Counted from the whole stretch's first letter, positions 1 through 11,845 are shown. The stretch: DNA of 63,311 nucleotides, filler included, from Pelomyxa schiedti (GCA_020536535.1; 6 parts of 6 records of this genome joined end to end with filler, not necessarily neighbours in it), one strand, 5' to 3'. The notes: a model not told the origin generated them from the letters alone. Made by a program: numbers and translations.

Positions 1-621
1 GCTGTGACTCACGAAGTGGATTGGGTTCTATTCGACAAGTCGGCAGTGAATGAGGTTGTTGCCGTGGTGAGGAATCGCTGGGAAGATGAGAAACATGTGT
101 TTGTGGTGATTGATGTTGAGAGGTCATTCTGTTCCCAGTCATTGTGTGTGTTGAGTGAAACGAGCGTGGAGTTGGAAGAAAGGGACCTCAGGAGCATTTT
201 GATGTACAGAAAAGCCGGTTGCAGGTGTTTCATTGGGAGAGCGACAGCCATGCTGGGGACAACACCTTATTGTGTTCAGTTTTCGGAAGACAACCCCGAG
301 GTGATAGTTCTGCCACAGACACAGAACGTGAAGACAGTCTCCCAATTGAGTTCACATCTGTTTGCTGTTGTGACCAACACCACAAATTGGCTGTGTGACA
401 TCTGGGACTGCAACGAATTGACGGGGCCCCTCGTGAGAGTCCAGAACCCCAGTGGGCACATCAGTGTCCACACAGAAGCCGAGGCTGGGTTGGTGTTTTC
501 ACTTGGGGATGACGAATTGATTGTGGTGGAACCACTCACAGGCTGCACTGTTCTCAGTGTCACTCTCCCTTCTTCTAAAGGGCACCCCTATGAACTTGCT
601 CGTCCTTTCTGTTTTCCTTGA
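1..621 (+). CDS. 5'-truncated member of expanded lineage-specific 'WDCN' family (copy 1 of tandem triplet)
   Basis: Intronless ORF running off the window start; VVIDVERSF, CDIWDCN and C-terminal FCFP* motifs shared with 2075-3289. Confidence 0.75.
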   Translation, partial: AVTHEVDWVLFDKSAVNEVVAVVRNRWEDEKHVFVVIDVERSFCSQSLCVLSETSVELEERDLRSILMYRKAGCRCFIGRATAMLGTTPYCVQFSEDNPEVIVLPQTQNVKTVSQLSSHLFAVVTNTTNWLCDIWDCNELTGPLVRVQNPSGHISVHTEAEAGLVFSLGDDELIVVEPLTGCTVLSVTLPSSKGHPYELARPFCFP

Positions 622-888
622 TTCCCTTTTACTTCGACGAAGGAACGATGGTCACTTTGAGGGTGATTTTGAAAACTATTCTAAAACTCCTTTCCACATC
701 CCTTCGGTCACACCACCAACGTGATTCTCCTAACTCTGAAGGTTCGGAGAAACATTCCAACAGAACCTGTCAGATCAGCGCTTGTCCCCCCCATGTGGAG
801 CACACCCCCCCCTCGAATTTACTTTCTTATGCAAGGCAGGGGCCATTTTTTTTTTTTGATGTACAGTTTTCTTCCATAGTCCACGACG

Positions 889-1962
889 ATGACGACCCCG
901 AACGAACCAATACCATGGCCTCATGCAACACTCCGAGCCATCGACCAATTTGTTTCGCTGTGCTTTGTGTCGCACCCAAGGTGCGGTTGGTCTCGTTCCT
1001 CCTCGGCCCACAATCAACTCGCGTCGTCGTCATCATCGTCAGAGGCAATAAACGCGGTGAGGTTGGTGTGGGAGCTGGTCAAGCACACTCGCCGACAGTT
1101 CGCCGTCGGGCCCTGCATTCCTTCACGTTATCTTTACTTGCTGCTCATGTTCGATGTGTCACCACTTGTTCTGGGAATCCTCGAGGAGCATCGTGCCGTC
1201 GGAACGCGTTCTTGTGCACGCCGTGAATCGCGAGTGGTTTGTGGCGAGCGGACATGAAAGCGATGAGTGGGAAGGAAACAGGCTGAGAGTCTCAATTGGG
1301 AGGCTGGCTGACAGGAAACCTGGTGTCACATCTGTTGCTGTAAGGATTGGTTACTCTGCCAGCGGTAACAAAGTAGATGCGATCTTCAACAAGTTGGTGG
1401 TGAATGAACTTGTTGTTGCAGTGAAGGATTGCAGGATGCCAGAGAAATGTGTGTTTTTGGTGATTGATGTTGAGAGGTCATTCAGTTCTCAGGCAATGTG
1501 TGTGTTGAGTGAAACAAGCATCAAGTTGGATAAAGGAGGTTACATTGTGGGCCACTCCTTCATTATTCTACTGCAAAGAGCGTCCTCCAGGTGTTTCATT
1601 GGGATAGCCAGGCTGGGGACAACACCTTATTGTGTACAGTTCTCAGAAGACGACCCCAAAGTGATATTTCTGCCACAAACAAAGAATGTGAAGACAGTCT
1701 CCCGATTGAGTTCACATCTGTTTGCTGTTGTGACCAACACCACAAATTGGCTGTGTGACATCTGGGACTGCAACGAATTGACGGGGCCCCTCGTGAGAGT
1801 CCGAAACCCCACACAGAAGCCGAGGCCGGGTTGGTGTTTTCGCTTGGTGGTGACGAACTGATAGTGGTGGAACCACTCACAGGCTGCAATGTGCTCAGTG
1901 TCACTCTCCCTTCTTCTGAAGGGCGCCGCTATGAACTTGCTCATCCTTTCTGTTTTCCTTGA
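889..1962 (+). pseudogene. Frameshifted WDCN-family copy 2
   Basis: N-terminal TLRAIDQFVSLCFVSHPRCG (ORF 889-1257) shifts into HAVNREWFV...WDCN (ORF 1154-1861). A 19-nt deletion near 1810 relative to copy 1 (agtgggcacatcagtgtcc missing) shifts the FCFP* tail (TGA 1960-1962) out of frame. Confidence 0.7.
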
Positions 1963-2074
1963 TTCCCTAAGTTTGTAACGATGTGCATTTCGCCAGAGTT
2001 GTTCGAACAAGAAGTACTTCTTGTACTACTTTCCTTCGCGGCACTGGTTCCAACAACACCGAACCAGTTTGGTG

Positions 2075-3289
2075 ATGGCTTCGACGAAAGACAGACCGCG
2101 GGCTCATGGGACACTTCGAGCCATCGATCAATTTGTTGCGCTGTGCGTTGTGTCGCACCCAAGGTGCGGTTGGTCTAGTTCCTCGTCTTCATCGTCCCAC
2201 AATCAAATCGCACCACCATCGTCGTCCGAGGCTAGAAATGCAGTGAGGTTGGTGTGGGAGTTTGTCATGGACACTCGCCGACGGTTTGCAGTCGGGCCGT
2301 ATTGCCTTACCGAGGGTATTTACTGGCTGATCAAGTTTGCTGTGTCACCGCTTGTTATGGGAATCATCGGCGATGGTCCGGTGGTCACATTTTACGACTG
2401 GAGGGCAAAGCATTGGAGAGAGGGGTGTGCATCAGAGTGGGTCGTGTTGCATGACTTGGCAACTGGCGACGAGCTGTCACTCCTGCCAAGGGTTCTGGGC
2501 CCGCAAAAAAGCAATCCCGTGCACGCGGTGAATCACGTGTGGTTTGTGGCGGGTGGATTTGGAAGCGATTTCGAGGAAGGAAAGATGCTGGGGGTGTCAA
2601 TTGGGAGGCTGGCGGACAGGGATCCTGGTGCCACGTCTGTTGTTGTCAGCCTTGGTTACCCTGCTGTGACTCACGAAGTGGATGGGGTATTCTTCAATCG
2701 GTCGGCGGTGAATGAGGTTGTTGCTGTGGTGAAGAATCGGAATTCACAGGGGAAATGTGTGTTTGTGGTGATTGATGTTGAGAGATCATTCAGTTCCCAG
2801 TCTCTGTGTGTGTTGAGTGAAACAAGTGTCGAGTTGGATGGAGGGTGTTACATCCTGAGCTATTCCGTTATTCTGCTGTATGGAGCCTGTTCAAGGAGTT
2901 TCTTTGCCAAGGCGGTGATCAGTTACAGGTTTCACTGCATCCAGTTTTCAGAGAGTTGTGGTTCTGCCGCAAACTCCCAGGTGGTGGTTCTGCCGCAAAC
3001 AATGAACGCAAAGAGAGTGTCACCATTGACTTCACATCTGTTTGCTATTACGCATTTTCTAAGAGGCACAAACTTTCTGTGTGACATCTGGGACTGCAAC
3101 ATATTGACAGGGCCACTTGCGAGAGTTCAACAACCACTTCATCACATCGAAGTGGATTCAGGGCTTTTGTTTTCCCTTTACGGCAATGAAGTGATGGTGA
3201 TGGAACCACTCACAGGGTTCATTGTGTTCCGTGTCACTCTCCCATCGACACCATGCAATGAGCTTGAGTATGCCTTCTGTTTTCCTTGA
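2075..3289 (+). CDS. Intact WDCN-family protein (copy 3)
   Basis: Single ORF with RAIDQFVALCVVSHPRCG, HAVN, DVERSF, WDCN, FCFP*; start placed at the ATG of MASTKD by analogy with copy 2. Confidence 0.8.
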   Translation: MASTKDRPRAHGTLRAIDQFVALCVVSHPRCGWSSSSSSSSHNQIAPPSSSEARNAVRLVWEFVMDTRRRFAVGPYCLTEGIYWLIKFAVSPLVMGIIGDGPVVTFYDWRAKHWREGCASEWVVLHDLATGDELSLLPRVLGPQKSNPVHAVNHVWFVAGGFGSDFEEGKMLGVSIGRLADRDPGATSVVVSLGYPAVTHEVDGVFFNRSAVNEVVAVVKNRNSQGKCVFVVIDVERSFSSQSLCVLSETSVELDGGCYILSYSVILLYGACSRSFFAKAVISYRFHCIQFSESCGSAANSQVVVLPQTMNAKRVSPLTSHLFAITHFLRGTNFLCDIWDCNILTGPLARVQQPLHHIEVDSGLLFSLYGNEVMVMEPLTGFIVFRVTLPSTPCNELEYAFCFP

Positions 3290-3726
3290 ATCCTTGGTGT
3301 TGATAATTAAAAAAGGCTGAGAGAGTAGACTGGGATGTTGTGGGCTGCATAGTGTTGTTGTCCTCATGTGTGTTAGAATGTTTATATCACAACTTTGTCT
3401 TAACTATTTACACGATAGAGCAGTCGCATCAAAAAGTGCGACTAAATTAAGAAAACAGCTTAGACATGGAGTTGGGGTGTGCCTGAAGTGTGGTGGGCTT
3501 TCTGTTTGTCAGCTGCTTTTCCGAAACCTTTCCCGCTTTTTGCTCCGCATGCGGACTCTTTTTACTCCTTCTGTACTGTCTCAGTGTGATTTGGGTCTCC
3601 CTCCGGATGTGGGTTCTGAGACGGCCTACAACACTGTTTACCTGTTTCTTGGTCATCCTGCAGTACCCTTTCAAAAAGGAAGGAAGGCGTAACGTCGTCT
3701 TCTTGAAAACCATTACCACTTTGTCA

Positions 3727-6700
3727 ATGTCACGCAACGGGCCACGCGTGGGATCCGTCGACTGGTTCGTTGCCGCGTATGATGGCGACACCGACGCACT
3801 GCGGCGTATGCTGGCCGCCGACCGCGACCTACTAAACTCTGTAAACGACCGACGAGAACGAGTGGTGTGAATGCGGCACCTCCTTTTTTTTTCACCCGAT
3901 AATAATTCGTTTTGTGCGGGGCGCACGCACGCACACACACAGACAGCGTTGCATGTAGCCACGTGGGTACGGGCACCACAGTGCGTCGAGTTCCTGTTGT
4001 CAATGAATGTCGATGTCAATTCTCAGGTATAAGGGCTGGTACTCACGCACTCACTCACTCTCACTTCACAGATTGTGTGTACTATCCTGATCACGTTTTC
4101 ATTCCCTTTCCTCTAAAAAGTAAATCCAGGGGGTTTCTGTACGTACTGCCATACTCTCAATCCTTTTTATTGCGTTTATGCATCAATTTCTGACTTACTG
4201 CAATTTATCTCTCTTTGCTCTGTGGCATATTTAGATTGTGTGTAACAGCTCCCAACCATTTTCATTGTGTTTATTCATCAACTTATGACTTTGCTTATCT
4301 CTCATTGCTTTGCTCTGGGCATGTTTAGCTTGTGTGTAACAGCTCCCAACCCTTTTTATTGCGTTTATTCATCAATTTCTGACTTGTTTCAATTTATCTC
4401 TCTTTACTTCTCTCTGTGATAAACTCAGGGAGTGTGTAACAGCTCCCAACCCTTTTTATTCTGTTTATTCATCAATTTTGACTTGTTTCAATTTATCTCT
4501 CATTGCTTTGCTCTGTGGCATGTTTAGTATGTGTGTAACAGCTCCCAACCCTTTTTATTGTGTTTATTCATCAATTTCTGACTTTGCTTCAATTTATCTC
4601 TCATTTCTTCACTCTGGCATGGATAGCTTGTGTGTAACAGCTCCCAACCCTTTTTATTGCGTTTATGACTTTGCTTCAATTTATCTCTCATTGTTTCGCT
4701 CTGTGGCATGTTTAGTATGTGTGTAACAGCTCCCAACCCTTTTTATTGCGTTTATTCATCAATTTATGACTTTGCTTCAATTTATCTCTCAATCTTTCGC
4801 TCTGTGGCATGTTTAGGATGTGTGTAACAGCTTCCAACCCTTTTTATTGTGTTTATTCATCAATTTATTACTTTGCTTCAATTTATCTCTCATTTCTTCA
4901 CTCTGTGGCATGTTTAGATTGTGTGTAACAGCTTCCAACCCTTTTTATTGCGTTTATGACTTTCTTCAATTTATCTCTCTTCACTTCTCTCTGTGATACA
5001 CTCAGAGAGTGTGTAACAGCTCCCAACCCTTTTTATTGCCTTTATTCATCAATTTATGACTTTGCTTCGATTTATCTCTCTTTGCTTCACTCTGTGGCAT
5101 GTTTAGCATGTGTGTAACAGCTTCCAACCCTTTTTATTGTGTTTATTCATCAATTTATGACTTTGCTTCAATTTATCTCTCATTGCTTCGCTCTGTGGCA
5201 TGTTTAGGATGTGTGTAACAGCTCCCAACCCTTTTTATTGCCTTTATTCATCAATTTCTGACTTGTTTCAATTTATCTCTCATTGCTTCACTCTGTGGCA
5301 TGTTTAGCATGTGTGTAACAGCTCCCAACCCTTTTTATTGCGTTTCTGACTTTGCTTCAATTTATCTCTCTTCACTTCTCTCTGTGATAAACTCAGAGAG
5401 TGTGTAACAGCTCCCAACCCTTTTTATTGCGTTTATTCATCAATTTCTGACTTTGCTTCGATTTATCTCTCTTTGCTCTGTGGCATGTTTAGCCTGTGTG
5501 TAACAGCTCCCAACCCTTTTTATTGCGTTTATTCATCAATTTATTACCTGTATCCATTTATCTCTCATTTCTTCACTCTGTGGCATGTTTAGATTGTGTG
5601 TAACAGCTCCCAACCCTTTTTATTGCGTTTATTCATCAATTTCTGACTTTGCTTCAATTTATCTTTCATTGCTTAACTCTGTGGCATGTTTAGCCTGTGT
5701 GTAACAGCTTCCAACCCTTTTTATTGTGTTTATTCATCAATTTATTACTTTGCTTCAATTTATCTCTCATTTCTTCACTCTGTGGCATGTTTAGATTGTG
5801 TGTAACAGCTCCCAACCCTTTTTATTGCGTTTATGACTTTCTTCAATTTATCTCTCTTCACTTCTCTCTGTGATAAACTCAGAGAGTGTGTAACAGCTCC
5901 CAACCCTTTTTATTGCGTTTATACATCAATTTCTGACTTTGCTTCGATTTATCTCTCATTGCTTCACTCTGTGGCATGTTTAGCATGTGTGTAACAGCTT
6001 CCAACCCTTTTTATTGTGTTTATTCATCAATTTATGACTTTGCTTCGCTCTGTGGCATGTTTAGACTGTGTGTAACAGCTCCCAACCCTTTTTATTGCGT
6101 TTATTCATCAATTTCTGACTCACTTCAATTTATCTCTCATTTCTTCACTCTGTGGCATGGATAGCTTGTGTGTAACAGCTCCCAACCCTTTTTATTGTGT
6201 TTATTCATCAATTTCTGACTTTGCTTCTATTTATCTTTCATTTCTTCACTCTGTGGCATGTTTAGGATGTGTGTAACAGCTCCCAACCCTTTTTATTGCG
6301 TTTATTCATCAATTTATTACCTGTATCCATTTATCTCTCATTGCTTCACTCTGTGGCATGTTTAGACTGTGTGTAACAGCTCCCAACCCTTTTTATTGCC
6401 TTTATTCATCAATTTCTGACTTTGCTTCAATTTATCTCTCATTGCTTCACTCTGTGGCATGTTTAGATGGTGTGTAACAGCTCCCAACCCTTTTTATTGT
6501 GTTTATTCGTCAATTTCTGACTTTCTTCAATTTATCTCTGTAACACTTTATATCATTTTTCTACCTGTTGTTGGACAATTGGATCCTTTTATTACCATAA
6601 GGGAGTAAGTACACACTCCCTGGCAGCTTTTTGTTCTAACTTTCCGCGATTTTTCTGTTATTTTGTACTGCTGCAGATTGTATGAACTCCTTGAATCTTT

Positions 6701-9700
6701 ACTGTGCTTACCTTCTTATTTTTCAGGAGGTACAACTTCTTTTTTCTTGCTCTTGTGGTGTCACTCATATATTTTTTGGGGGGTATCTCTTTCAAATTGA
6801 AAGGGTGATGTACGTACCCACCCCCCAATATCCTTTGTTTTCTTTCCTTTAATTGATGCTTGACACAAAACTTAATTTTCCTCTCCCTCTCTCAGACTGC
6901 GCTTCATCTTGCCTGCAGAGAAGGAAACGTTGCAATTGTGAAACAACTTCTGTCTTGTGTGGGTATTGGCACTCACATCAAGGTTGTTTCCCCCCTATTT
7001 GATTGAAATTACTGTTGATTTTCCTGTTGGCACAGAACAAGGAGGGAAAAACAGCACTTGAGAGCTCGAAAAATGATCAAGTGAGTGAAGTGTTCCAAGT
7101 CATGTGGCCAGCCACAACATCAACAGCAACGCAGGCAGTCACTTCTCCCAAAACAGCCCAACCACAACAATCACATCCAAGACCACCCTCTGCTCCAAAC
7201 AAGCCATCACCATCATCCACCCCACCAAAACCACAACCACCACCAACTGCAACTGTGGGGGCAACAGCAAGACCAACCACAACAATGGCGACCAGCAAAG
7301 TGCTCCCCAAAGCTCTTGACATCAACAACAACGTCAAGAAACAAGAGAGAGACTGCTGGCAAATCGAGGCAAAGCAGCTGAAGAGTTTAGTGAAAAACCC
7401 CTTCCTCAAATGAAAATTGCAAACGCACTTTGTGTTCAAAAGATGAGATCATGGAACTGAAGGGAAGAATCACACAATTGGAGGAAGAAAACACAAAGAA
7501 CCTGAATCTTCTCCATGAAGAAAGAAAACAACATGCGACCGCTCAAGAAAGAATTAAAGAAATGAAACGAATCTATGAAGAAAGAGAAACAGACAACCAA
7601 CAAAGATTTCGTGAGCTTCAACAACAATGTTTGTGCTCCCCTTTCCTCCTTCCTTCTCCTTTCAGATCTTCTTTTTTGCGTTTCTCATTATCTCATGTGG
7701 TGCACATCATCAAGGGAAACATAATTCAGAGGTGTGTGTTGTTGTTGTTGTTGTTTGTTTGCCTTGATGTTGACAATAACAATAATAATCTCTTACTTAA
7801 CAACATGCATCCACACAGATGGAGCTCCAAAGGTTGCAAGAAAAAACCGTGTCCGACATGACTGCAAAGAACAAGGGTTTGACACACCTTCCTCCAGTTG
7901 AGCTCATCATTGGCTCCCTCCTCATTGAGGGGTTTTTTTCCAAAAACAGAACTCATGGGACTGGAGGCACACATAACAACATTGGAGGAAGAAAGTGCAA
8001 ATAACCTGAAAATGTTTTGTGACGAGAGAGAATCTGACCAACAAAGATTTCAAGATCTCCAACGCTGTCTGTGCTTGCTGCCCACTCCACACTCCATCCC
8101 CTCCTTTTTTTTCTCAACCCTCAATCACACCCCCATACACACAACATACATGCAGCATATAATAACGCGGCACCACACCAACAATTCTAATTCTGTCAAT
8201 ACAGACACAAATCATGTGATGTCACATATTGAACAAGGAGAAGGCATGTGGCGCAACATTCTCCCTCCTGAAAACAATAAGACCAACAACGGCTGCAAGC
8301 GGTCGCAACTCAGGATCGCGTTTGAGCACCTTCCCTCTTTTGATGAAATTGTGTGTGGATCCTGTCCCCTTCAAATGGTGCTTTCCTCTCTTGAAGCTCC
8401 CCCTTTTCTTCTTTTCTTTTTTAAGCTTCCCCCACTCCCTTTTTTTCTCCATCAAAAAAGATTGTGAAGCTTATCGTTTCAAAGAAGTTTGGAGTTGAAC
8501 CAACACAACAAGTGCTTTTCACTGGTGGTTCAGAAAATAACAACTCTGAGGAACTGCTGCCGACCGATTCATCCATGACCTTGGATGACATTCAACAACG
8601 ACAGCAACAACAAATCAGCGGCAGCGGTAGTAGCAGCAGAAACAGATCTGTGGTTCAAATCAAGGTTCGAATCAAATCAACCATGTCAATCCAAGAGAAA
8701 GACCTGAAAGTTGTTTCCACACTTGGAGTTGGAGCCTATGGAACTGTTTTCAAGTGCACCTTCCATGATGATCACAACGCGATGACCACTTCCTCCTCCT
8801 CATCATCGTCATCCTCATCAGAAAGAACACCAACGTTTGTGGCAATTAAAGCACTTCACGAAGCCATCAAGTCTGAGTTCAACATCACCAGGTTTCAGCA
8901 GGAAGCTCTGGTGAGTGTCCGATGGAGTTTTGCCATTGCATTCTAACAATCCATCAACTCAACAGGTTTCGTCAAGCTTAAGGCACCCAAACATTGTGAG
9001 ATGCCTTGGAACTTGCGTCACGAGCACAGGGTCACTCTGGATTGTGTCTGAACTCATGGAAATGAGTCTCAGGCAGCTCCTTCAACAGGTTGGTTTTTGG
9101 CAACCTCTTCCTCCCACTTGTTTTTGGTTGGACTCACTCAAATTGTAAATATGAATCTATATATACATACATACCCAACCACACAATTATTAGAAAGATT
9201 TGACATTCATGGAAGTTGTGGCAGTCTCTTCTGGAATTGCTAAAGGAATGACTGCACTTCACAGGTTTCATTTAATTTCAGTTCTTCTTGCCACTCTTTT
9301 AAAAATAATATCATTTTACATTGATTGGCTTAAAAACAAAAAAAAAAATGCAATCATAAAAAACACAGGAGGAAGTACATGCATCGGGACCTTAGCAGCA
9401 ACAATGTTCTCCTTGATTCTTGTGGAACTCCAAAAATAACTGACTTTGGTACTTTCTTTCACACACATGCCTCAACGCACTTGACTCAATCCCAACTGAA
9501 TATTAAGGAGTATCAAGAGCCCTCCAGCAGCACCAAATCGACCGCGGGAGTAAACCAGCTCCGATTGGGAGTTTTACAAATGGGGCTGGAACACCAATTT
9601 ACTTGCCACCACAGATGCACACTGGGCACTACGGAATTCAAGGTATTTTGGATTGTTGTGTTCATCCTGTTGATTTAGTTTTCACTCAACACCATCTAAT

Positions 9701-10417
9701 TCTGCGCCACACATAAACAAACACATTCAAAAGGAGACATGTGGGAGTTTGCAGTTTTGTTGAGTGAACTTCTTCAACGCGAAGTTCCACCAGTCAAGAT
9801 GCCAAAGACCGGCGCCCAAGTGATAGAATTTATGAGGGTCCAGCGGGCATCACTCTCAGCCCCGGAAATTGCCGGTTGACAACAAAAAAAGCCAAAAACT
9901 CTCTGCGTCACCTAACGCGCACACACACAGAAGTGGACCGGATTTGTGATGACGTTGGAGATTATCCCGTTGTGGAGTGCCTCAGCCGGAAGATCGCAAT
10001 AATTTCCGCGTTGCGCTCTGAGCCCAAGATGAACAACAACGTGCACCGTGCGTGTGCTGGTCTGTTCCGTCTCGTTGTTGAATCCTGCCTCTCGATCCTC
10101 GGTTCGTTTTTCCCTTCCTCGTTCCGTCCCTCACCTCGCCACTCACGCCGACTCCCACGCACACACGCGCAGAGATTGATCGGCCGTCATTCCCGGCAAT
10201 CGACAAAGTGTTGATGACGTGCGCCGAGATCGTGTTCACAAATTCCGGACCTGACCTATCAACAACAACAAGCACTGTTAACAACAACAACAACAATGCT
10301 CCCACAGCCGACGACGACGTTACCGGACACATCAGCAGATGCCTCGCCAACATCGCGGCAACGTTCCCTGGCCACCGCAATCACACAGAACCAACAACTG
10401 CCACGTCTTCCTCTTGA
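3727..10417 (+). CDS. Multi-exon ankyrin-repeat / Pro-Thr linker / coiled-coil / ubiquitin-like / TKL-type protein kinase
   Basis: Exon 3727-~3864 (WFVAAYDGDTDALRRML); exon 3943-4026 (TALHVATW..VDVNSQ); microexons; exon 6896-6982 (TALHLACREGNVAIVKQLL); exon from 7036 (NKEGKTALE). Kinase motifs in successive exons: LGVGAYGTV, VAIK, HPNIV, HRDLSSNN, DFG, GTPIYLPPQ, DMWEF. Stop TGA 10415-10417. Central exon joins are approximate. Confidence 0.85.
4150..6540 (+). repeat. Tandem array of 24 units (81-101 bp), each an intron-like sequence plus a 3-nt variable candidate microexon
   Basis: Unit consensus gtgtgtaacagctcccaaccctttttattgcgtttattcatcaatttctgactttgcttcaatttatctctcattgcttcactctgtggcatgtttag|NNN; AG and GTGTGTAACAG invariant in all 24, NNN variable. 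Confidence 0.95.
6804..6809 (+). other. 6-nt microexon GGTGAT (Gly-Asp) completing ankyrin G-x-TALH
   Basis: ttgaaag|GGTGAT|gtacgt; phase 0; supplies the consensus G-x immediately before TALH at 6896. Confidence 0.75.
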
Positions 10418-10562
10418 GCGCGGACCCAATGAACACTCACCCATTTCATGATCATTTTCACCTAACAACATCACTTTTTCCCTTTACATTTACTGAATTG
10501 ATGCCGTGGTAACTTTCGACGAGTCAGACTCACGTTCAGCCTCAAGCCTGAATTGGGAGTGA

Positions 10563-11059: not shown

Positions 11060-11159
11060 NNNNNNNNNNNNNNNNNNNNNNNNNNNNNNNNNNNNNNNNN
11101 NNNNNNNNNNNNNNNNNNNNNNNNNNNNNNNNNNNNNNNNNNNNNNNNNNNNNNNNNNN

Positions 11160-11592
11160 CGACCGCGGGAGTAAACCAGCTCCGATTGGGAGTTTTACAA
11201 ATGGGGCTGGAACACCAATTTACTTGCCACCACAGATGCACACTGGGCACTACGGAATTCAAGGTATTTTGGATTGTTGTTGTGTTCATCCTGTTGATTT
11301 AGTTTTCACTCGACACCATCTAATTCCGCACCACACATAAACAAACACATTCAAAAGGAGACATGTGGGAGTTTGCAGTTTTGTTGAGTGAACTTCTTCA
11401 ACGCGAAGTTCCACAAGCCAAGATGCCAAAGACCGGCGCCCAAGTGATAGAATTTATGAGGGTCCAGCGGGCATCACTCTCAGCCCCGGAAATTGCCGGT
11501 TGACAACAATAAAACCCCAAAAACTCTCTGCGTCACCTAACGCGCACCCACACACAGAAGTGGACCGGATTTGTGATGACGTTGGAGATTAT
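11160..11592 (+). pseudogene. Near-identical partial copy of kinase C-lobe exons (9540-9963)
   Basis: Repeats GAGTPIYLPPQ/GDMWEF exons and introns with a few SNPs and indels, then diverges into unrelated sequence; lies after a 100-N gap. Confidence 0.65.
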
Positions 11593-11845
11593 TGGGACTG
11601 CCCAAGTGTGCACACTTTTTATCGGGTTTATTAGTTTTCTCAGTCCAGAGACGAGGAACTGAGACGGAAAAAAAAGGCGTTTTCTACAAGACCATCGGCC
11701 ACGGGGTGCAANNNNNNNNNNNNNNNNNNNNNNNNNNNNNNNNNNNNNNNNNNNNTTAATTAATTAANNNNNNNNNNNNNNNNNNNNNNNNNNNNNNNNN
11801 NNNNNNNNNNNCCCCCCCCCCCCCCCCCTCTTACGAGATTCGAGG

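Follow-up and report, generated by a model that had tools for sequence, protein, structure and literature searches.

The stretch of DNA analysed here (the window) comprises 63,311 nucleotides of the Pelomyxa schiedti genome (GCA_020536535.1), in which six parts of six records are joined end to end with filler. On its plus strand it carries an intact ankyrin/coiled-coil/kinase gene that runs from position 3727 to a stop codon at 10415-10417. The protein consists, in order, of three ankyrin repeats and a cap, a Pro/Thr-rich linker, a region encoded by coiled-coil-like exons and a TKL-like kinase domain. Its most unusual part is a cassette of candidate microexons between two ankyrin repeat cores, those of exon 2 (3943..4026, +; 28 codons with a phase-0 end, matching Pfam Ank positions 4-30 and kept in 12 paralogs) and exon 3 (6896..6982, +; phase-0 start at TALH). 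Between these exons lies an array of 24 units of ~100 bp (4139..6469, +), each made up of a short intron of 78-98 nt and a single 3-nt candidate exon in the arrangement AG-NNN-GT. The triplets are located at 4235, 4329, 4429, 4528, 4627, 4716, 4817, 4918, 5006, 5107, 5208, 5308, 5397, 5493, 5593, 5694, 5795, 5883, 5984, 6065, 6165, 6266, 6366 and 6467, and a scan of the window found every one of them between AG and GTGTGTAACAG. An earlier reading of this DNA (the sequence-only reading) had reported the same places, order, flanks and spacer lengths, all of which were reproduced here. Tandem Repeats Finder (TRF) likewise detects a tandem array of ~101 bp, and the array is probably no assembly artefact, as contigs from DNA runs show head-to-tail unit joints, those runs possibly being the assembly's own source.

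The array is bordered by further candidates that are not part of the repeat. Upstream lies a fixed 3-nt microexon candidate, ATT (4072..4074, +; Ile, replaced by Thr in two paralogs), recognised from paralog conservation, and next to the array a 9-nt candidate with donor GTACGT that encodes G-V-S (4130..4138, +). The latter reads G-x-P/L in most paralogs, with a hypervariable middle codon, and is 9 nt long in 12/12 paralogs with this region; it had earlier been taken for a 3-nt GGG exon. Downstream follow GGA (Gly; 6602..6604, +; donor GTAAGT), which is invariant in 14 paralogs and similar to the GGA-type units of the array; ATT (Ile; 6677..6679, +), whose codon, AG and GT are invariant in 12/12 aligned paralogs; GAG (Glu; 6727..6729, +), aligned with GAA or CAA in paralogs; and a 6-nt candidate for Gly-Asp, the G-x that precedes TALH (6804..6809, +), whose exon-intron-exon arrangement has 13 genomic copies, two of them with synonymous GGC. 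The Gly-Asp microexon and its donor (window 6802-6830) could form a local hairpin in most paralogs, with different C-rich arms. The cassette thus totals 28 three-nt candidates, one of 9 nt and one of 6 nt, i.e., 99 coding nt or 3.6% of the coding sequence, and the 2869-nt gap parses as 31 GT-AG introns of 45-132 nt, compared with 53-138 nt for the ordinary introns of the gene. In the Pfam Ank model, exon 2 ends at position 31 and exon 3 starts at position 4, and because this leaves five positions between them, a canonical repeat needs five codons from the cassette region.

Within the window, the AG, the GT and positions +1..+13 of the units are invariant, whereas the three triplet positions carry 1.78, 1.92 and 0.89 bits, so that the triplet is the most variable part of the unit, as had been suggested, at its first two positions and not at its third. 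When units were collected by a downstream motif rather than by the AG/GT letters themselves, the AG was kept in 168 and the GT in 169 of 170, the conservation of +6..+22 in this set being inflated by the anchor motif. Inside the unit, a TGAC branch-like motif ~47 nt ahead of the AG ranks with the most strongly conserved elements, and no extra AG occurs between branch region and acceptor in 196 units. The units are not zero-length AG/GT recursive splice sites, as 3 nt always lie between, and no triplet that starts with GT was found in any array unit of the genome. Apparent TAA and AGT triplets were parsing artefacts and were removed. The donor varies to GTGCGT (23 units), GTATGT (6) and GTACGT (2), each a change at +3/+4 and never in the first GT. 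Since these variants abolish the second GT while the first stays constant, the alternative +2 donor that had been pointed out in GTGTGT is unlikely.

As 24 copies of one repeat are not independent, the pattern was also tested throughout the P. schiedti assembly (52,367,397 bases in 5337 contigs; PMC8887013), in which the gene of the window lies on contig C687. Paired YAG-N3-GTDYGT sites at intron distance number 231, against 17 for a reversed-pattern control, and the same pairing with other exon sizes gives 1 for N4 and 10 for N2. A stricter donor pattern that excludes GTGTGT retains 22 paired 3-nt sites against 1 in the control, mostly in unrelated, non-repeat sequence. These stricter patterns replaced a loose three-unit pattern, whose genome-wide control count exceeded the test count. 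Runs of 3-nt exon candidates with consensus donors lie outside the family at C75:6408-6559, C163:66852-67528, C176:7182-7568, C417:46249-46508 and C423:172286, and further ones at C466:38062-38422 (like C1292 and C2441), C601:49662-50120, C851:56661, C1111:6077, C1497:4698 and C3882:185. With such runs in ~10 other places, among unrelated introns, P. schiedti seems to use exons of this kind generally.

The comparison with paralogs covered 20 loci besides the window (21 in all), about 15 further family loci standing outside it. Wherever a contig includes a flanking exon, the array is in the same intron (16/21 loci, the window included) and is followed by the same set of G, I, E/Q and GD, with triplets that differ from gene to gene. 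Fixed candidates keep AG, codon and GT in 12/12 aligned paralogs, and their introns gain and lose bases; in these alignments the exon candidates always measure 3, 6 or 9 nt while intron lengths vary freely. The 3-nt spacing is retained even in the diverged arrays C418a, C530 and C368. Stop codons were found in none of the tested ordinary exons of any paralog. The genome's only stop-codon unit, a TGA, lies mid-array at C219:12194-12209 (-; locus L033), in a paralog that is intact in the other exons tested. The array of C3085 (L010) is 97% identical to that of C706 (L029), and C2695 (L036) has the same unit types in a different order; these related arrays might reflect allelic turnover or, alternatively, be amplification chimeras.

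Across the 170 units, the entropy amounts to 1.91 and 1.87 bits at the first two codon positions and to 0.85 bits at the third. Pairs of close units, chosen on an independent part of the intron, show a difference at positions 1-2 in 46-65% of comparisons, and each flanking site differs in 10-17%; the excess is ~4-6-fold, and choosing pairs on the flanks that are also scored inflates it to ~35-fold. A changed amino acid is seen in 76-81% of close unit pairs, and differences that are only synonymous make up 0-1.1%; the evidence for selection is this pairwise non-synonymous excess, not a formal codon model. Most units end in T, which makes the array a stop-free, NNT-like pool that cannot become a stop by mutation at positions 1-2. 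The encoded residues are mainly Y and F (15% each), followed by D, L, G, I, H, P and R. Units are mosaic and blocks of them have been duplicated with changed triplets (units 8-10 and 17-19; 15-16 and 23-24), which indicates unequal exchange and conversion. The helix-1 surface positions of the same repeats vary as well, position 9 in exon 3 showing six residues among 12 paralogs, and it is the beta-turn and helix positions that are randomised in DARPins (PMC4384111).

On this evidence the array units are in all likelihood translated exons, and very probably exons under diversifying selection. The proposal that the triplets act as coding microexons at the ankyrin hairpin is thus borne out by the five free Pfam positions, the family-wide architecture and the near-pure non-synonymous variation. 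It would be a highly improbable coincidence for the cassette to be an intronic minisatellite with a mutation hotspot, in which AG-NNN-GT is incidental. The ~100-bp repeat is certainly in concerted evolution, homogenisation can spread any motif, and no junction is seen among the RNA contig ends listed. Such a minisatellite would, however, leave unexplained why the non-repeat flanking candidates hold their splice sites and codon in every aligned paralog despite varying introns, why the 9-nt length is invariant and why diverged arrays hold their spacing. The codon-position asymmetry, the lack of GT-starting triplets and the need of the ankyrin frame for five codons from the region argue against it too.

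The RNA data consist of contigs from two single-cell RNA runs of one sample, compared with 6435-10420 at 85% likeness, so that some of the contigs represent paralogs. For at least five kinase introns, of the C687 gene or of paralogs, the loose ends correspond to the ends of the adjoining exons, and one contig lies on 7443-7608 (exon 5) with 68 further letters before it; the family is therefore transcribed and spliced. RNA contigs also cover sequence of the last unit of the array and portions of the introns (6542-6611 and 6611-6661), and are absent at 6685, 6886 and 7632-7764. By analogy with plants, in which the introns that flank microexons are detained (PMC8831610), the pattern over the cassette introns would fit intron detention, with DNA carry-over as another possible source. 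Homolog and profile searches and a cluster look-up for transcript-derived proteins returned only NCBI gene predictions of P. schiedti and generic ankyrin proteins. The public Pelo_ predictions retrieved mostly stop at the cassette or read into it, and because predictions break in this way, standard annotation would overlook similar systems in other genomes. In Pelo_4154 the two ankyrin exons are separated by G-K-P, matching the 9-nt exon, Pelo_4541 continues with I-G-N-P after exon 2, and several annotated paralog proteins have, after exon 2, a residue that matches the exon at 4072..4074, followed by read-through.

These data bear on a model in which a fixed short path, either G-I-E-GD or the 9-nt exon plus GD, restores the 33-residue repeat, the array itself being rarely used and serving as a slow retained-intron block or a reservoir for DNA exchange. 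Both routes give exactly five codons, RNA contigs do lie on unspliced array sequence, and Pelo_4154 runs from exon 2 through G-K-P to exon 3. We nevertheless consider this model improbable, as it cannot explain non-synonymous change at codon positions 1-2 with constant length, AG and GT, and as a skip of 2.5 kb is at odds with the short introns of the gene. The same two routes remove the basis for another suggestion, namely that three single-codon exons restore the 33-mer as a working rule: there is no sign of a count to three, which is unsupported because G-I-E with GD, or the 9-nt and 6-nt exons, already give 33 residues. If three were nevertheless chosen, the 3654 combinations calculated for 3 of 29 become 3276 from 28 three-nt exons, with 639 distinct tripeptides.

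The reading that we favour, with a probability of roughly 0.57, is that the array consists of real single-codon exons, a subset of which enters each mRNA, so that a cytoplasmic sensor kinase gains variety in the beta-hairpin that lies between its ankyrin repeats 2 and 3. Selective use is favoured over full inclusion because of the mid-array stop in an otherwise intact paralog, the large differences in array length between close paralogs and a docking-like site described below. Were all microexons constitutive instead, each gene would make one protein with a long loop, a natural LoopDARPin with 28 extra residues here and roughly 10-28 across paralogs, and diversity would arise solely between paralogs or alleles by turnover and positive selection. 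For this rather unlikely alternative speak the cassette introns, whose GT-AG ends and sizes are like those of ordinary introns, the strong array donors, the near absence of stops and the old, non-repeat runs of 3-nt exons in unrelated genes; inclusion of most microexons with detention of their flanking introns, as in plants (PMC8831610), would also fit the RNA contigs on cassette introns. Constitutive inclusion is harder to reconcile with the TGA unit of C219, with loops that would differ several-fold in length between close paralogs and contain long stretches of F, Y, I and L, and it assigns no role to one site complementary to all units. Flawless serial splicing of 25-30 near-identical short introns would, moreover, be demanding.

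The docking-like RNA site is predicted at 6600..6624 (+), where it overlaps the fixed Gly microexon and is complementary to the acceptor, the donor and +11..+16 of every array unit; an inverted-repeat search finds the complementarity to array units at 6601-6622. The predicted duplex consists of three helices (acceptor, donor +1..+7, and +11..+16) and leaves a 3-nt loop that faces the variable triplet exactly. The median energy of the duplex, -22.9 kcal/mol, compares with a background of -7.5 +/- 3.2 and is surpassed by 0/819 local windows; the corresponding numbers in six paralogs are 0-7 out of about 580-820. In 14/14 loci the arm of the site pairs with array donors better than with its own donor, and regional folds favour long-range pairing over a local hairpin. 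For ordinary array units a local hairpin could be dismissed (mean z +0.55), and a conserved docking site was not detected upstream. Downstream docking pairings are known in Dscam-type clusters (PMC4691838), and structures of this type have been described as arising when an exon and one hairpin arm are duplicated together (PMC6071210).

We suggest the following two-layer account of how the favoured reading might operate. In the DNA layer, which is well supported, the intron part of the units is multiplied, rearranged and kept uniform by unequal exchange and gene conversion, and selection alters codon positions 1-2. In the RNA layer, each short intron would be defined on its own, so that any subset of exons is frame-neutral. 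The likeliest guide would be competing base pairing, in which the site at 6600-6624 binds one unit at a time, masking the fixed Gly exon and looping out all downstream units. Either one unit would then be chosen in place of Gly, in a Dscam-like manner, or the pairing would set the exit point of splicing from the array and give loops of varied length. That competing base pairing guides exon choice is, as judged from predicted duplexes, doubtful, and unguided stochastic skipping appears about as likely as guided pairing. A broader view, in which docking or controlled skipping picks exons in the manner of Dscam at single-residue resolution, so that each of ~35 genes yields many hairpin variants and the organism a somatically diversified intracellular repertoire, may hold at slightly less than even odds.

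Several observations weigh against this reading. No spliced junction across the cassette or into exon 3 (6896) is among the RNA contig ends listed (6435-10420); combinatorial inclusion, as first put forward in the sequence-only reading, is plausible and gains a candidate mechanism in the docking-like site. The array donors (GTGTGT) are no weaker than the ordinary donors of the gene, plant microexons are usually part of the major isoform (PMC8831610), and the array of C1936 is redundant, with 17 units for 5 amino acids, which would be wasteful if one unit were chosen. The units share ancestry, and their counts are therefore not independent and overstate statistical power. Further points concern the docking-like site. 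Folding of the region yields no unusual stability (z = -0.26), half of the loci have a weakened or truncated donor helix (about 5/7 pairs left in three, the arm cut short by deletion in four), and the +11..+16 motif is lost in C418a. Units pair with the site of their own locus no better than foreign units do. Two-sided compensatory changes were absent across the loci compared, which show one G-U-preserving change and several losses; as a product of structure prediction, the site is a lead with no covariation behind it. It also resembles GGA-type units and folds its own hairpin in 14/14 paralogs, and the pairing might have arisen incidentally, if site and units descend from one Gly unit that bore a hairpin.

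The cassette combines individual features found in a variety of known diversification systems. One likeness is to the Dscam1-type clusters (PMC6071210, PMC4691838). Tandem duplication of homologous exon candidates in the binding region of a receptor-like protein is common to both, as are a single site with complementarity to an element of each unit (the predicted duplex being top-ranked in 7 loci), a plausible origin by duplication of an exon with a hairpin arm, and a downstream position of the docking site. In contrast to those clusters, the exons here are one codon long, the introns measure ~100 nt and are near-identical, the pairing covers splice sites and the neighbouring exon rather than intronic selectors, and the protein is a cytoplasmic kinase of an archamoeba; mutual exclusion is a candidate feature here. 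Very short, frame-preserving exons (3, 6 and 9 nt here; 3-81 nt there), arranged in strings, are a trait in common with the Schistosoma micro-exon genes (MEGs; PMC10526429), which vary their protein by alternative splicing. MEGs are, however, secreted, have long introns and consist mainly of microexons, and the present cassette, with its short introns, no signal peptide and only a small fraction of the coding sequence, placed in a folded ankyrin domain, is not a MEG.

Concerted evolution with diversification at binding positions is shared with brown algal ROCO and fungal HiC NLR genes. The brown algal ROCO/LRR genes (PMC11378527) are a candidate immune receptor family with exon shuffling, diversifying selection and alternative splicing in ligand-binding repeats; there an exon corresponds to a whole LRR repeat, and here to one residue of an ankyrin hairpin. 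Fungal NLRs with WD, ANK or TPR repeats (PMC4986451) show concerted repeat evolution, repeat-number polymorphism and positive selection at few binding positions, but their repeated DNA is wholly coding, whereas 97% of the present unit is intron and one codon is coding. DARPin and LoopDARPin libraries (PMC4384111) vary the same beta-turn and helix-1 positions and add a randomised loop, yet are synthetic, with no genomic or splicing mechanism. Lastly, single 3-nt microexons (e.g., in RPS24) and plant microexons of 1-15 nt (PMC8831610) illustrate that spliceosomes can include such exons, often with detained flanking introns; unlike the units of the array they are isolated or few and conserved, neither tandemly amplified nor hypervariable. 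Literature on microexons in Pelomyxa or on tandem arrays of single-codon exons was not found in a search that most subscription papers lay outside.

If selective inclusion is true, the system would be close to categorically new. It would represent the finest grain of splicing-based receptor diversification, in which each exon contributes one amino acid, and would have arisen independently of Dscam, MEGs and LRR exon shuffling in a protist without known variable receptors. The architecture is undescribed even under full inclusion, with 100 bp of repeated intron per variable codon, and it lets repeat turnover edit a binding loop residue by residue, free of frameshifts or stops. The cassette is likewise a test of how a spliceosome handles dozens of consecutive 3-nt exons. 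A signal peptide or membrane span was not detected in the protein (exon 1 hydropathy maximum 0.14; no 19-residue window >1.24 in any exon), and any ligand would therefore be intracellular. A role in the recognition of intracellular microbes or symbionts is a guess that draws on the architecture.

In the remainder of the gene, all ordinary exons are open and the phases close throughout; profile searches and folds were made exon by exon. Exon 1 (3727..3864, +) encodes the N-terminal ankyrin-like repeat and has two candidate donors 3 nt apart, after 3861 or 3864. This double donor (window 3859-3870) amounts to the presence or absence of a Val at the hairpin of the first repeat, and the Val is present in annotated paralogs. 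PF00023 scores above cut-off on exons 2 and 3. Exon 4 (7036..7384, +) supplies the ankyrin C-cap and a Pro/Thr/Gln-rich linker. It is followed by the coiled-coil-like exons 7443-7628, 7715-7731, 7819-7876 and 7950-8066 (+), in which frames and phases close and the coiled coil was judged by eye; the second, of 17 nt and with a GTGTGT donor, is required for the frame in this region. The linker, kinase domain and C-tail occupy exons 8205-8377, 8461-8910, 8966-9088, 9194-9264, 9369-9448, 9508-9642, 9734-9874, 9931-10101 and 10173-10417 (+), which end at the stop codon and encode a TKL-like kinase with GxGxxG, VAIK, HRD and DFG motifs. PF07714/PF00069 (PK_Tyr_Ser-Thr/Pkinase) match on one exon, below cut-off as a fragment; the catalytic motifs stand in an intact frame, and the earlier assignment of the host as a kinase gene is upheld.

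With a profile of exon 1, about 36 copies can be located genome-wide, corresponding to a family of ~35 members, and the strong public protein matches of this profile come from P. schiedti only. Family loci on C361, C418, C530, C695, C1120, C1138, C1160 and C1535 share their contigs with other ankyrin matches in long open frames, which suggests that ankyrin-rich gene clusters may surround the family loci. At 11060-11600 of the window, a gap of 100 N precedes another, almost identical copy of three kinase exons, which is either a tandem paralog or a scaffolding artefact; C219 has a similar fragment upstream of its gap. Upstream of the gene, window 1-3290 holds three tandem paralogous, intronless open reading frames that end in FCFP and belong to a family unrelated to the kinase, the middle copy being split by frameshifts.

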